Assembly (NCBI GenBank): GCA_964188305.1
Contig: OZ076888.1
Source of the DNA: Podarcis bocagei
Taxonomy: Eukaryota
Reading direction: 5' to 3' (one strand)
DNA length: 64,000 nucleotides
In this document: positions 1,504-51,500 of the stretch, one piece after another
Position numbering within the stretch: the stretch's first letter is position 1
Layout: every line of letters starts with the position of its first letter
Notes under the pieces: model-generated
What the model was told of the DNA's origin: nothing
Database searches by the model: none
The model's input: the letters and a program-made list of their open reading frames with translations, nothing else
Made by a program: the position numbers and the translations under genes

Positions 1504-25276
<23,773 letters not shown>

Positions 25277-42500: not shown

Positions 42501-45500
42501 GTTGGAAGCTCCTGTGCTGTACCATCAAGGCTTCTAAACTCATATTTCATTCTTACCTAGTTAAAGCCACATATGGACTTCTCTTGAGTGCTTATAACAA
42601 GTACAAAGATTGTAAGCTATTTTACACTTGGACACACTAGGGATCATGCTCCTATGTACAAAGACCCCCTTTCGAAATGCCGACAAGGGGAACAAAAGCA
42701 GGGAAGAGGAAGGGTGAAGGCAACACAATATAGTGATGTAACAGAAACCCGTATCCTTGTGAGATTAAGCACTTTCTATATATATAAAAAAGTCAAGACA
42801 AAGTTAAACCTAAAAGAAAGTTGATGCATCCAAATTCAGAAAAGCCAGAATTAAATTGCCTTTTACTCCTGAGTTTCTTGGGATGGCTCTGGGCAAGCTG
42901 CATGTCTCTCCCTGGCTAATTAACCCCACAGCAGATAAAATAATACATTTATATATAAAATCTACGAGTTTTGTAGTAGCGCTTGGAAACTTCCTTTCAT
43001 GTTAGTGTCAAAAAGCAAAGGACACCGAAGACATTTGCTAAAGGGCTACAGATGCAACTCTTTTGAACAGAAGGTGGAGAACCTCCAGCTCACTGGCCAA
43101 ATTAGGTCTCGCATATAGATCCCAATTTGCCCCACAAGGCCATTTCCCCCAAAAACCCATGTTCACCTGCACCACACCTGACAGCATCAGTGATGTCAGT
43201 TGTGGGGAAGTTAGAGACACAACTGCAAACTGACTGGCTTAAAGTGCAGTCCTCATTGTTCCTTGGCAAGCAAGGCTTGGTGTCCATCAACACCAATCAA
43301 CTGTGGCAACCTGATCCCTTCTGGCGCCATGATTCTATGGTCAAGCATTACCCAGAGGCTTCCCAATCTGTAAACTCGGCTATACAGACTGTGCTAGCAA
43401 ATTTAGCCATGAGTTCTTAAAAGGTAGTAGCTAAGTAAGGTCACCCTCTGGGGAAGGATTCCTAAAAACCAAACCTGGTTGGAGCACCCTGGTTCCTACC
43501 TGTAATCCAAGAGACGTGGGAGGAATAGGTTCGAGACAGCCAGTTGGGAGAGACAAAGTTGTGCAACCCCAGTGCATAGAGACCAATCTCGAAGGCGCAG
43601 AGGTGGAGGTTGCGATGAGGACCCTGGTGGCCGCCACTAGAGGATGGGTGGGTGAAAATGGAAGTACTGCTGTTTCCACCCGCCTTGATGAGAACTGTCT
43701 TGGCCAGCTCAAAATAGAAATGTGCAGCTGCTTCCGAGGGCTGATTTGGGACATGAGGAGCATGGCTCTCTGGACGCCTGCCCTTATACCTGAAAGGAAC
43801 AAAGTGAAATATGTATGAAGTGAACTTAAGACTAAACCTGCACACCCACCATAGAAAGGAAGCTCAGATAAGGCATCATATTGTGGGTTTTCCAAAAGAT
43901 AAAATGTTCAGGCTTTGCAGACTCTCCAGAGAAGAAACTCTGCAAGAACTGGGCCGCTACTGAGAATACTTCACTATTTGCTCTTGTCATATGACCCCAG
44001 TCATCAAAGGAGCACTCGTTTAATTTATAATTTCAAAATGAGTGTGGCCAAAAAAGTAATAGTAAGTTCACTTGCTGAATTTCCAGGTCTAATTCTGCCT
44101 GGCTCTCCCATTGAAACTCCCAACTTATTATTATATTACCCTTCATCCAAAGATCACAGGGCAGTTCAGAACATAAAAATACAAAATGAGAGCACAAAAT
44201 ATATAATAAAACAAAAAATGAAATGAAAACAGTAACCCCCCATCCCTCAAACACATTTAAAAGGCCATAGAATGTTAATCAGCCAAACGCCAGGTTGAAG
44301 AGGAATGTTTTCACCAGGAACCTAAGGACAGATAACAAAGGCCCCAGGTGAGCCTCCCTGGAGATCCCATCTCCCTTCATCCACCCCAAGAAAATATTGG
44401 AGGGGACCAAACCTCCCAAAGTTGGTGGGCATTGCTGCCCCCCAAAAAACTTTTTTATTCACCTTGGTCCCCCTGCACACAAAGATTATGATTGCAGGGT
44501 CTGGGTGAAAAGCCTCCTTGTGATATATTTCTAATGAAGATAGCCTTTTATTTTATTTTATTAAATATACTGCCCTTCATCCAACAATCTCATCCTTGGG
44601 AGGTCCAAATACTGAAAAGATGCACAACTTTGGAAAACAGACAGCAGCTCTTACCTGCCGACCTCTACCGTCTTTGCACGTGCTCCTCCACTAGCTCTCC
44701 TGCTTCCACTGGAGGAGGACGAGCCCAGGGAGTCGCTGGAAGAGCTACTGATGCTATCGCTGTCCTGCCCTCTGCCCCAGGAAGTGGCTGCCCATCCTCC
44801 CCGCAGAGGCCGCCTGCTGAGGGTTGGAGAACTGTCCGAGGTGGTTTCTGGAGCACTGCTGTCAATGCTGGCCATTCCTGCAACGCCACAGTCAAAGGGC
44901 ACAGCAGCAGGTGAGAAGGTCGGCAGCATACGAAACCAGAGTTTTACAACAGGGAACGTTCTTCTCCCCCCCACCCCACCCCAAAAAACAAGCTGAAACA
45001 TTTCAAGTAAGTCAGAACCTAGAGATGTAAGCTGACCAGAAAAGCTAGAGAGCTGATATACCAAAATCTCAGACTAATTCAAACTCATATGAGCCATGAA
45101 CCTACTAGGTGAGGGATACTATCTTACTTTGCAGGTGTGTTGGGGATTACTGAAAATGTGGTGGAAGTGAGTATCTTTTCAGTGAGCCAGAACAAATCTT
45201 TAAAGCTTAAACAGCCTGGGTCATGTTAAGAACTGTTCTCTCCCTTTTGTCAGCTGAGATAATCTTCAGAGGCCCTTCGCCATCCCACCTTCAGAAATTA
45301 GGCAGGTGCCTATGTTGAGAGAGGACTCTTTTTTTAAGTTGTACTTGGGCTCTGCAACTCTCCCTAAACACTCATTCACCTTTAGGCAAGAGGTGAAGAC
45401 TGACTTATTCTCATAGGCCTTGAACAGTATTTAGGTTCTTTTTACTGGTTTTAGTTTGTTCTTGGTTTGCTGCCCGCTTGCTATTATATCTTTTGTAATT

Positions 45501-48500
45501 TCTACTGTTATTTGTTTTTGATATCCACCGTTTTTATATGGGTTTGCTTTCAAGCTGCCGTGGGGACACGTTACTTAAATCCACTTAATATTTAAATCTC
45601 CTAATATTTAAAAATCTGTAAGAAGAATACACAAAAGCAACACTAAAACTATGAAGCAGTATAATTAAAAAAACAGTAAAGCAGCATGTTGGGTCAGGAA
45701 AAGCATGGATAAAAAGAAATGTCTTCACAAGGTGTCTGAAACAACTAACGGATGATGCTTCATGTATGGCTGAGGGAAGGGAATTCCACAGTGAGGAGGC
45801 AATAGCAGAAAATGCCCATTTTCAGGCCACAAGTAAAATTTCCTCAGATTATCTAAGTGAACTTATAGCAGCATGCTGAATTGGTCCTGCTTCACTCTGC
45901 CCTTCCTTGAATTTGGAGCAACAGATCATTGCCTTGGCTTATTGCAATATACCAGGGATGTCCGATCTACTGGTCGATCCCTTGCCCTCCATTGTTGGAG
46001 AACAGAAGATGGAGTTTACAAACCGAGGCTATTTTTCCCTCTGCAATCCTTCTTTGACCCCAAAATAATGTAAAAACATTTCGCACCCCCTCCCAAGGCT
46101 AAGCAAATTATGCCTCCCGAACCCCCTAAAATGGGGCTTTTCCCCTCCCCAATAAAAAGCTTTGACCTGAACCCCAATAAAACGGGGGTAGATCACTGCC
46201 AGTTTTTAATTCTGTGAGTAGACCGCAGTCTTTTGGAAGCTGGCCACCCCTGCAATATATGAAGCGACACTCATAGTTTATTCCTCCCAAACAAACCATG
46301 ATCAGTAAGAGAAGAACAAACTTTGGCTTGTCATCATGGTTTGTTTAGAGAGAAACAAACCAAAAGTGCTGGTTTACAGTCAAAGTAAGCCATTGTTTAT
46401 GCGTTGGCTGAATGATGCAAACATCTGTCAAATCCAGCATTACGTTTCAAGCAGCGGTCAGCCAGATGCCTCTGGTCACAAGGAGGAAATAAAAAGCAAC
46501 AGGCATCTGCTGCTTTATTCTCACCAAAAAGTGAGGTGTTCAGGTGGGGGAGTAGGGCTTAACAAAGCCTATGTAGTTAAATGGAATCTTCTCTTTCAAA
46601 AGCGAGTCTATGCCTGAATACCATTTGTACTGTGTGCAGTTCTGGGTGCCACATTTTAAGAAGAGTCTAGGCAAACTGCAACTGGTGCAGGGGAAGGCAG
46701 CAAGAATGGTGAGCAGCATGGAAAACAGGTTCTATGAGGAAAGGTTGAAAAACTGGGTGCGCTTAGCCTGGCGAAGAGACGCCTGAGTGGGGACCATGAT
46801 AGCACTCTCCAAATACACAGGAGAGGGCTATGACTAGATCTACTGGACTTAAGCGAGAGGAAGGTAGATGATGAAAAACTTCTTGATAGTTCAAGCAGTT
46901 CAAGAACAGAACCAGTTGCTGGGAAGGGGGTGGGAGAGAGCTATAATTCCCTGAGAGTCTTTAAGCAAAGGCGAGGATGCTCTAGCTCAGGATTTACGGT
47001 ATCGAGGAGAGAGTTGGCCTAAAGGGCCACTTTCAACTCTTATGTTCAGGTATATCCTGCCTCTGAATCTGCAGTTTCCATTTAAACATCGTGTCTAATA
47101 TTCTTAGGGAAAGTCTCTCACAAAGGCTTTGTTTAACCCCCTCTTAAAAGCTATCTAAACCAGAGGGCATCTTTTAGCTCTATTCTGCATTATATAATGT
47201 ATACTTGATTTTGGCAGTCCTAAACTTACTTAAAATCATCTTCAAGGAATATGCCCAAGTTCTAGTGTTGAAAGAAGTCTACCTTCCACTTCCAGCCACT
47301 CATCATTTTATAAAACACTGTCACATCCCAACTACTTCCCCATCCCACCTAAAAGACCGCCAACTTGTATCCTTTCTACATAGTAAAGAGTAGTAATGTG
47401 GTTGCCTCTAACTTTCAGTTACCTATTTTTGTTTTGATGGGGTGACCAGAACTGTACACAGTATTCTGTATGTAGCCATGCCACATATTTATACTGGCAT
47501 TATGCTTGCTGTCCTTCACTGTTGGGAGGGGAGAAAAAAAAAGAGAGAGAGAAGCTAAATGTTTTCTGTTTCTACAGCGTAAGTCAAGATAAAAAGAAAT
47601 GTCGTCCTCTCGGTAGGAAAAATATGATTTGACAGATCTGGAAGATGTGGTTAGTGCATGCCAATAGCATCTTGAAAAAAATTAACTTCTTAGGTTAAAT
47701 ATTTTAAAAAAATTGTTTTAAAAGAATTTAACAATGGGAGAATCCACTATTTTCCACCCAATTAAAAAGAAAGAAAATAGCTTAATTATGAGTCCTGTCC
47801 ACCACTGTATACACACACCACTAATTACTTTGCAAATGTAACAGTCTTAATCCAAGCCTGCACAACTTGCAACCCAGCAAGCCAAATGCGGCCTTACATA
47901 GTGACCCACTGGGGGCTCATTAAAACTCACTTGGGAGTACAATAAGCACTTGATATACTATGATACAAGTATGGAAGCCAGGTCACAAATTATACAGGCA
48001 CATCTTCTTCTATATTAATTCAAAGTGGAGGAACTGAACCAGAGAGCTAAAAGAATAACGATAAACCTGAAACAGAATCTAAGCATTTATTTGTTTGATT
48101 ACCTCCTTTAAACAATCTGAACTGCTTTAGGTAAGCCTAGTAACCATTAAAAGCTGGTTAGAAACCCCAGCCCATGAAGCTATGGGGTAACTAATGAGAG
48201 GGCTAGGCCAACTTCACTTTGGCAGCAGTGAATTCCTCACTGAGTGTGCTGATCCACCAGGGAAGATTTGTGCTTCGGTAAGAAATACTGGAGGTGACAG
48301 TAGATTAAGATATTAACAGACAAGCAGACAGGCAAGTCATATTAATTCAATTCAAAATGAATGTGCAACAAAGAGCAAACAATTTAACATGCATGAAAGT
48401 GATTCCAGAAATGTAAAACATGCAGAATGAGACAGCAGAAAGTTATGTGCCCCCTGCTCAAAGTTACCTGTGTGCTTCTTTTTTTGTCTGACTGGGGAAC

Positions 48501-51500
48501 CCCAGCACCTCCCATTGTAGCCACCTCTATTTCCAAGGGCTAGTCGGCTAGGAACTTTCCCTTCTTGCTTTAAGACACTGGGTTCCATTGGTGGGTCACA
48601 AGGAGATCTCTGAGGGTTATCTGGGAAAACACAAGAAGTGGCAAGTTAAAACAGCAGCAACAGGAAGAGGAGGATTTCAAAGGCAGGTGTAACTTTGGCA
48701 GACAGGAGACAGTAGTGGATAATCACAGGCTTTAGTACTGTTGCCCTCTCTTTCCCACATGGAAAAGAAAAACAGAAATTGTGAGCGCACACTGCAATTA
48801 GAATCGGATTCCGTGAAGGCAAGGAAGATGTCATTCATTTTTTATTCTGCATCACACTTGCATAATAGCAGAAGAACTTGACAACCTATGAGACTAGAAC
48901 AAATATACAGGCAAATGAAAAAAAAAATCTGACAGCAACCCATTTCTTTCGTTTCTCCTTCCACTGGTAATTAGAAGACAGCTGTGATCCTGTGGAACAG
49001 TAAGTCATACCTTGGGAGCTCTTTTCCAAAAAGGGTTCCGAAGTGTTGCTCTGGACAGCAGTGGTTACCCCTGCTTGTTGCGTAACGGGTGTTCCTGGGA
49101 GGTGCTGAATGGGCGCAGCTGATTGGGTAGCATGTTTGGAAGGAGATTTCTGATTGGCTACTGTGGGCTTGCTGGACGAGTAGAATGAACTTAGAGTCTG
49201 AGGCTTGTGTGTTTGGCTCTCCCTGTCCAACAGCTTATCCAAGATCTTTAAACAGAGAGTGGAACAACATGAAAGTTAGCATCTAAACAAAGGAAATGTC
49301 AGGAGAGTGGGAATGGGGAATTAGATATGAACAGGGGAGTTCTCCGAAGACTGCAGAGGGGGGAATTAAGTTTATTACAATCAAGAGAAGCAGAAAGAAG
49401 CAAGAAGAAAGATCCTTTCGGCAGGAAGAAGACGGAAGCGGTTTGCCATACTGCTGAATAGCTCAACCTCTTTTGTTTATGAATTTTGCAAACATATTCA
49501 TACCCACTACCAGGAATAAACATCTAAAAATCAGGAATAAACATCTAAAATCCTTTTAGGAAATCAGTTTGATCCACTATCTTCAGGTGCCATTGAGAAA
49601 CAACTACGATTGACACAGGACCCAGCATAGATATGGCCTCTTGGGAGAAATTGTGGAAAATAACAATAAACTTCTCAGCATGCTATACTCTTAAAAGAGA
49701 ACCTACAAAAGATGATATATAGGTGGTACCTCACCCCTAGTAAACTTGTAAAAATGTATTAAAAGGGAACCAATTTATGTTGGAAATGTGAGGCGATTGA
49801 AAGGACATTTATACACATGTGGTGGGGTTGCACGAAAGCCAAAAAGTATTGGGAGATGATATACTCAGAATTAAAAAAGATGTTAAGGGTCTCATTTCCC
49901 AAGAAACCAGAGATGTTCTTATTGAGTATAGTAAAGGGGGAAATACCCAAGAAAGTACATATCTTTTCCTCTACGCAATAACAGTGGCCAAAATAATTTA
50001 TGCCCAAAGGTGGAAGAACAAAAATAGTCCCCCCAAAATAGACTGGCAGAATAAGCTAATAGAATACGTGGAGACAGCAATGCTGACTGCCAAGGTAAGA
50101 AATCAAGGTGAGTCGAACAGTGGGAATACTTTGGCAAGTATTTAAAGAAATATAACAATCAGATAAGCTTCCAAGTGGGGTTAGATATATGAGCAGCAGT
50201 TAAAATAAGTAGAAGAAGGGTGGTAATAAAGAAGATGAAGCTTAAAAAGGACCAAATAAGACCCCACGGAAGTCAAAGAGTAAGATAAACAATGGCAATT
50301 GTATAACTGATGTATTAAGATATGTAAAATGCATAAATAAAATTTATGCAGAGAGAGAGAAACTACTACATTGTATGATGAAAAAAATGCACTATGCTCA
50401 GATACCATTAAACAGCCTAAGGTCTGAGTATCTCCAAATGGGACATACTTTTTTTAGCTTAGATTGGTCATCCTTGTAAGTGATCATCAGGGCTAGAGCG
50501 AGATCTCCCTTCTCCCTTCGGGTGCCTTCACACAACAGAGGGTGCTCTGCTTCACTCACTGTCGTCTTCATGCCTGGAAGGCAGAGTACAGAATTCAAAC
50601 ATTTATCCTGCTTGTTTTATATAATCTCTCCATTTATTTAAGTTAAGTAATAAACCATCAATTATGCTTCCCCATAGCAACATCTGTTCCCTGTGAGGCA
50701 TCAGGCTTCTCCTTATTACCATTACATATTAAGCTAAGAAGAAAAATTAAGTTCTAGGTGACTTGGCAGGATGACCAAAGCTACATCTCTTCATCAGTGA
50801 GAGATGAGACCTGGCATAAGAAAGAGAAGCTAAGCACTCACCAAGAGCAGCGACAGCTGCCTCAAAACCTAGCTCCTCATCTCCAGGCATTTCATTATTC
50901 CAATTACGGCTTGGAGGTCTGGATCCTGTAGGAGAAACCACTGGGGAAAAGAAAGATGGCAAATCAATAGCCAGCTCTATCATGCAAGGATTGCCTAGAC
51001 TGGTAAAAATTTCACAGACTTATGAAGATAATAGTCTAAAGCATTGCTTTCTAATGTAAACTAACCTCTATCAAGACCTAGATCTTGGGATTTTGCTCAA
51101 TTCTATTCTATAAAATAAATCTGTTTATTAAATTAACACAACCAAGCATTCTTAAAAGGCCACAAAAGCATCAGACACCTAATCTGCTGGCATCCATTTG
51201 TCTTGGGAGACAATGAAGGAGTTCACCTACACCTAATCACAGGTTTGATATTTGTGAAGACTAGAAAGGAAAAGGTGGGTGGGGGGAGTTACAAAGTAGA
51301 ATGAATTAATTTGGCAAGGCTGCTAGTATAGTAAAGCTGGAAACAGGACTGCAGTCACCACAAGGAAGTGTTTATGTCCTTAAAATTCCATCCTGAAAAC
51401 TACGGAATTTGTTCTTGGATCCGGTGGTTTACCTGGGCAAAACCTGCAGCAGAAGTTCAGTACTGACTGAAACTGGCCATGTTTTGAGAATATGGACATA

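Follow-up and report, generated by a model that had tools for sequence, protein, structure and literature searches.

A minor in-frame cassette exon of lizard ZSWIM8 whose sequence comes largely from a CR1-type retrotransposon

ZSWIM8, about 1850 aa at full length, is the CUL3 substrate receptor of target-directed microRNA degradation (TDMD), and one of its introns in Podarcis bocagei raises the question of whether a decayed retrotransposon has entered the coding sequence of this gene. The intron lies in a stretch of 64,000 nucleotides (assembly GCA_964188305.1, contig OZ076888.1), hereafter called the window, for which a preliminary description, made from the letters alone, had proposed an in-frame cassette exon of 96 nt. 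Is this exon in use, where does its sequence come from, and what would its inclusion mean for the protein?

The intron in question is 3590 nt long and of phase 1, and it splits codon 1140 of ZSWIM8 (human numbering) at a position common to lizard and human. We set the bounds of the two flanking exons by loose RNA ends (48622, on the acceptor side of the upstream exon, and 44652) together with the local sequence (Table 1). Both exons match the human protein in PDB entry 9rwz, the downstream one being identical at 57 of the 58 residues aligned to 1141-1198 of 9rwz_N (E 1.4e-24), and an exact look-up with the 78-aa open reading frame (ORF) over the upstream exon matched no record. Further upstream, the large exon with a stop-free stretch of 357 aa is 81 to 90% identical to ORF calls made for other reptiles on short genomic contigs. 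The longest of these contigs, L001 (SRR18112698, 8.7 kb; match at 4438-5235), ends 3.5 kb after the large exon, and in P. bocagei the cassette is 8.1 kb away from that exon.

Table 1. Features of the ZSWIM8 locus in the window (positions are those of the whole stretch)
Feature	Position	Strand	Basis or match
Big ZSWIM8 exon with the gene's longest stop-free run, 357 aa	55641-56711	-	Human residues ~437-774; also matches ZSWIM8 relatives
Upstream constitutive ZSWIM8 exon, ends ...AAGCACACAG, donor GTAACT	48468..48620	-	Human residues ~1086-1139; PDB 9rwz_N match, E 7e-13
Pyrimidine tract, 31 nt, uninterrupted, rich in CU repeats (CTTCTCTCTCTCT...), acceptor signal	47524..47554	-	Sequence
Cassette exon, 96 nt, alternative, phase-1 frame	47423..47518	-	Read directly
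CR1-type non-LTR retrotransposon ORF2 remnant, C-terminal of the reverse transcriptase (RT) domain (YKYVAWLHTEYCVQFWSPHQNKN...)	47362..47499	-	tblastn and profile
Cassette donor GTAACT, inside the CR1 remnant	47417..47422	-	Sequence and RNA joint
Second CR1-type ORF2 fragment, same intron, opposite strand, tail to tail with the first	46577..46783	+	Motif; 69-aa search query
Downstream constitutive ZSWIM8 exon, acceptor ...GTTGCAG, donor GTAAGA	44655..44877	-	Human residues 1140/1141 to ~1214; PDB 9rwz_N

Every splice element described for the candidate exon, from the polypyrimidine tract and acceptor through exactly 96 nt to a donor AG/GTAACT, is present in the sequence. On the minus strand, the tract reads CTTCTCTCTCTCTTTTTTTTTCTCCCCTCCC from 47554 to 47524 and is followed by AACAG. 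It is the best pyrimidine tract of the intron (18/20), CU-rich and stronger than the acceptor tracts of the neighbouring constitutive exons, and the region around it (47523-47556) was handled as a repeat during read mapping. The GT of the cassette donor occupies 47422-47421, and the hexamer GTAACT is common to this donor and that of the upstream constitutive exon (CACACAG/GTAACT at 48468).

Reading all three frames confirmed that the 96 nt are free of stops in the phase of this intron. Preceded by the single G that the upstream exon contributes, the cassette is translated as VKDSKHNASINMWHGYIQNTVYSSGHPIKTKI, which is placed between ...KKKHT and GMASIDSS, the frame running on into the latter. 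This frame is the sole open one, stops being present in both others, and the peptide EYCVQFWSPH is a reading of the 96 nt in another, stop-carrying frame.

How much this arrangement says by itself was gauged by a crude scan of the 3590-nt intron for pseudo-exons, which had to combine a length of 40 to 300 nt, a donor agreeing with the consensus at 7 or more of 9 positions, and an acceptor that has 14 or more pyrimidines among 20 and lacks a nearby AG. The scan returned 11 AG..GT pseudo-exons, two of which are in frame and open, both with the donor at 47423. At least one in-frame open pseudo-exon also occurred in about 14% of shuffled introns, and arithmetic from the base composition shows that a given frame stays open across 32 codons ∼13% of the time. 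The sequence pattern is therefore not beyond chance, and the claim of an exon depends on RNA.

We queried a public run index with positions 47373-47568, which comprise the exon and 50 nt of adjoining intron at either end; words lying within the exon account for 0.40 of all those possible in this interval. Fourteen runs, spread over eight organism labels (A to H) and six studies, contained exactly 0.32 of the sampled words, while four runs of organism B (P. bocagei), taken as DNA, contained 1.00. An equal share of 0.32 in 14 runs is what one expects where the exon has been spliced and its intron flanks are missing. The RNA status of 13 of these 14 runs is a guess, and they would contain the same words as X12, the transcript assembly discussed next, to judge by the equal share. 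The preliminary description had called the insertion lineage-specific, and this stands only as far as the exon sits in transcripts of eight closely related organism labels.

X12 (organism F, a sister organism) and three raw RNA-seq runs of organism B (X21, X22, and X23) were mapped on positions 44600-48700. In X12, the flanking exons are covered by contigs of 1223 nt (downstream) and 1275 nt (upstream) that continue into other exons and leave the intron uncovered; their ends, at precisely 44879 and 48468, mark a point where the assembly graph branches. A contig of 154 nt covers 47422-47518 and is joined to 44876/7, with no intron cover on either side. The skip 47423>44877 in this contig amounts to 2545 nt and has the ends CT..AC on the plus strand, that is, GT..AG on the minus strand. 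The length of 154 nt can be decomposed as 30 + 96/97 + 27/28, which would be the size of a 96-nt branch in a k=31 graph with 30-nt overlaps minus two common letters (AG). The start of the downstream contig at 44879, not 44880, would likewise fit a branch between ...TAG, at the end of the cassette, and ...CAG, at the end of the upstream exon. A 186-nt variant of the exon, starting from an acceptor at 47608, was rejected because the X12 piece ends at 47518.

The joint was also observed in P. bocagei itself, where two stranded raw reads of X23 cross 47423>44877 with 67 nt on the shorter side and at least 95% likeness; the two have one common start and could come from a single molecule. The orientation of the RNA reads is throughout that of a minus-strand gene sequenced from a stranded library. 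The downstream junction that had been predicted from the letters was thus found in the X12 contig and in both X23 reads, and together with the 14 exon-only runs it shows that an in-frame cassette exon is in use. On the upstream side, the joint 48468>47518 is absent from the joint listing, in which one joint was dropped beside the repeat at 47523-47556, and there is no loose end at 47518. The 30 unmapped letters of the 154-nt contig would be the end of the upstream exon, and hence this upstream joint.

Could the RNA signal nevertheless be an artefact, whether an assembly chimera, another CR1 copy, a retrocopy or paralogue, or pre-mRNA or genomic DNA? Such an origin could appeal to a joint seen directly only in one contig and two reads with one start, to an exon sequence that is transposon-derived, and to the label RNA being a guess for the contig runs, but it would also have to produce a 154-nt piece that ends exactly at both splice sites with no intron cover on either side, and a skipped part with GT..AG ends. 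It would further require stranded raw reads to give the same joint, again at 95% likeness or better with 67 nt on the shorter side, a window that holds no similar CR1 copy to supply it, and one and the same exon-only share in 14 runs from six studies. We consider an artefact highly improbable and treat the exon as genuinely spliced.

The depth of the cassette contig in X12 is 15.4, compared to 69.9 and 77.3 for the flanking exons, which gives an inclusion of about one fifth in this one run. The lower depth and the breaks of the flanking contigs at the exon ends imply a second path through the transcripts, and the remaining ones would skip the cassette by joining 48468 directly to 44877. This skipping joint is absent from the joint listing, in which the raw runs are shallow. 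With 13 to 20 reads mapped at the locus, the three raw runs are uninformative on the inclusion level, and reads on the cassette are present in one of the three.

Three further observations concern the mapped RNA. X12 differs from the assembly at 1 of 97 nt in the cassette and at 8 of 383 nt in the flanking exons, numbers that allow no test of selection; among the coding differences, T>C at 44666 is found in all X21 and X22 reads and also in X12, and G>A at 48490 is found in X21, both probably alleles. Within the intron, positions 46185-46236 have a very high summed depth in X12 contigs (bin of ∼5700, with single contigs of 34 to 47 nt reaching up to 2437), which looks like a short high-copy repeat abundant in RNA; Rfam and tRNA scans of the intron gave no meaningful match, and none at this place. 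One or two raw reads of X22 or X23 also fall on each of 45559-45832, 46107-46243, and 47751-47887 with no listed joint, and these could derive from pre-mRNA or from repeats.

We then turn to the origin of the exon body. Its intron holds two CR1-type fragments, and the second of these, used as a 69-aa protein query, retrieved 577 proteins at E ≤1e-3. The long proteins among them have Pfam RVT_1, and the matched stretch lies 60 to 70 residues after that domain (in P0037, RVT_1 spans 209-429 and the motif 489-511). A conserved region with KKD after the RT domain is present in the representatives, of which the copy in the window retains the post-RT part only. The hosts looked up for the matching proteins are sea turtles, a crane, and a shark. 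We take the motif to be typical of CR1, and the choice of CR1 over a sister clade (L2, Rex1, RTE) also leans on these hosts, there being no RT domain left for a tree.

A tblastn search of 150 representatives against the window yielded 148 high-scoring pairs at 47493-47425 on the minus strand, some of them extending to 47362, with E values down to 2e-7, and a profile of 44 segments matched the same 23 consecutive residues with an E value of 2e-9. These matches bear out the earlier reading of most of the exon as a CR1 RT remnant in another frame, that of EYCVQFWSPH. The remnant runs in sense to ZSWIM8, in a frame other than that of the exon, and has stops and frameshifts; its homology to RT-ORF2 proteins crosses the donor and goes 60 nt further into the intron, to 47362. 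By these protein-level comparisons, at least 69 of the 96 nt (47493-47425), and the donor with them, go back to the decayed ORF2 of a non-LTR retrotransposon, which lies in sense and in a frame other than that of the exon. Judged from the reach of the same homology, the pyrimidine run and its AG coincide with the detectable 5' end of the CR1 copy or directly precede it. Comparison by eye of RTASIMPV with SRTREVIVPLY had suggested CR1 homology up to the first exon base, but the profile search gave it no support.

An old vertebrate alternative exon, with a CR1 likeness that is coincidental, would accord with an intron position conserved to human. It is hardly credible given 23 consecutive residues that match an ORF2 profile at E 2e-9 in a frame other than the exon's, with homology running 60 nt past the donor into the intron. 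A word search with the 46-aa read-through of the cassette returned no relatives of 25 to 80 aa, which speaks weakly in the same direction, being limited by length. The exon body is better explained as a piece of CR1.

Other searches on the CR1 sequences gave little more. A blastn search with the CR1 region found no further similar copy at the DNA level in the window, a word search with the 69-aa second fragment gave no candidates, Pfam had no match to three pieces, and the ESM Atlas matches were to unnamed eukaryotic clusters only, a lead rather than evidence. The CR1 motif strings returned no paper from the full-text literature. In the frame of the cassette, the pyrimidine-tract region at 47529-47567 (minus strand) reads RKHLASLSLFFSP, with a weak likeness to the CR1 motif RLHLESCVQFWSP (E 0.26); this is probably chance in low-complexity sequence and could also be the trace of a duplicated CR1 motif. 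The antisense of the second fragment (46617-46804, minus strand) reads SPLRRLFARLSAPSF... and matches parts of predicted public proteins such as P0127, so some public "proteins" seem to be antisense CR1 ORFs. Among the public gene models, P0074 is a SCAN/C2H2 zinc-finger protein with the CR1 post-RT motif at its C terminus, and P0001, from a crane and annotated as "mitochondrial enolase superfamily member 1", carries RVT_1 and two copies of that motif. Both would be additional coding ends of CR1 origin or else chimeras made in annotation.

In the protein, the cassette adds 32 residues between T1139 and G1140 (human numbering), as anticipated, a placement fixed by the matches of both flanking exons to 9rwz_N. 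The insert is basic, with a calculated pI of 9.7, and carries one W, two Y, and three H amid an S/G/R/P-rich context. In the cryo-EM structure of ZSWIM8-CUL3 with AGO2-miR-7-CYRANO, interpretable density is lacking for three large unstructured regions (residues 500-757, 1016-1226, and 1427-1655), and the HEAT repeats that contact AGO2 lie around residues 1261-1375 (PMC13083262). The insertion point falls inside the unmodelled region 1016-1226. The preliminary description had placed it in a low-complexity part of the protein; unstructured and unmodelled it is (PMC13083262), but the label undersells the flanks, which are almost invariant from lizard to human. Such near-invariance indicates that the loop has some constrained function.

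Taken as a whole, we propose that a CR1-type copy has been exonised into a minor in-frame cassette exon of ZSWIM8, and we put the probability of this explanation at roughly 0.82. A 5'-truncated CR1-type LINE copy would have come to lie, in sense, within the phase-1 intron by which codon 1140 is split. The 31-nt pyrimidine run with its AG at the edge of the copy, and a GTAACT that would have arisen inside the decayed ORF2, would together define the 96-nt exon. The spliceosome includes it in the smaller part of the transcripts (about one fifth in X12), and in the others would join 48468 to 44877. Because 96 is divisible by three and no stop interrupts the frame in use, nonsense-mediated decay is expected to spare the long isoform, which would be a ZSWIM8 with 32 extra residues in the unstructured insert (1016-1226) between HEAT repeats. 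A CU-repeat tract is a classical kind of PTBP site, and the CU-rich tract at the acceptor is a possible candidate for PTBP binding, through which PTBP-type repressors might keep inclusion low. LINE-derived exons are reported to be held down by PTBP1/MATR3 (PMC6108849). The long isoform is probably tolerated, near neutral rather than adaptive.

A different reading would make the exon a selected and regulated module, in which the insert alters the choice of partners or substrates by ZSWIM8 and inclusion is switched by tissue, for example through release from PTBP in neurons or muscle. The frame is kept and the exon is used in eight organism labels, but these organisms are close relatives, and common use among them needs no selection; a frame open over 32 codons is moreover expected by chance in ∼13% of cases. 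The CU-rich acceptor tract surpasses those of the adjacent constitutive exons in strength, and near-invariant segments on both sides of the insertion point show that the loop is under some constraint. That exon reads occur in just one of the three raw runs could be due to regulation or to other causes, and inclusion is low where it can be estimated. Young transposon-derived exons are generally minor and neutral. We regard a regulated module as unlikely, and slightly more so its specific form, in which the CR1 insert is held back by PTBP via the CU tract, is released in tissues with low PTBP, and gives the ligase an altered partner or substrate range. A near-neutral minor exon is the reading that we retain.

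As such, the exon belongs to a familiar class. Transposon-derived exons are mostly alternative (PMC2911107, PMC2394776), and in chicken most of 70 such exons come from CR1 (PMC2911107). As in the exonisation of CR1 in chicken (PMC2911107) and of LINEs in mammals (PMC2394776, PMC6108849), the exon body and at minimum the donor stem from an intronic retroelement fragment, and the new exon is alternative, of low inclusion, and in a frame unrelated to the ORF of the element. What differs here is the host gene, ZSWIM8, the lineage, a lizard and its close relatives, the sense orientation of the element, and the acceptor, a long CU-rich run at the edge of detectable CR1 homology that comes from either the element or its flank. 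Primate Alu exonisation is similar in that an intronic repeat gains splice sites by mutation and gives rise to a minor, alternatively spliced exon (PMC2330237). Alu exons, however, come mostly from antisense copies in which the poly-T becomes the pyrimidine tract, whereas the LINE copy described here runs in sense and its tail is not the source of the tract.

With respect to human ZSWIM8 in 9rwz (PMC13083262), the gene and the exon junction (T1139/G1140) are the same and the flanks nearly identical. The human construct has no insert and its residues 1016-1226 are not modelled, so it is silent on the effect of 32 more residues. Our search of the literature for a ZSWIM8 cassette exon found no relevant paper.

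The cassette of P. bocagei is real, minor, in-frame, and CR1-derived, and it is a new example of a well-known process, an ordinary event of its kind. It documents CR1 exonisation for a reptile, in a gene that currently attracts interest, and it shows that a real, transcribed, transposon-born exon was picked out from raw sequence alone. Should the exon prove to be a regulated module after all, lizards would have a second form of the TDMD ligase, made through the disordered insert in the HEAT repeats. For the ZSWIM8 protein, the exon marks position 1139/1140 of the 1016-1226 insert as one that tolerates an addition of 32 residues in nature, and this natural variant offers a way into the role of a conserved but unmodelled loop.
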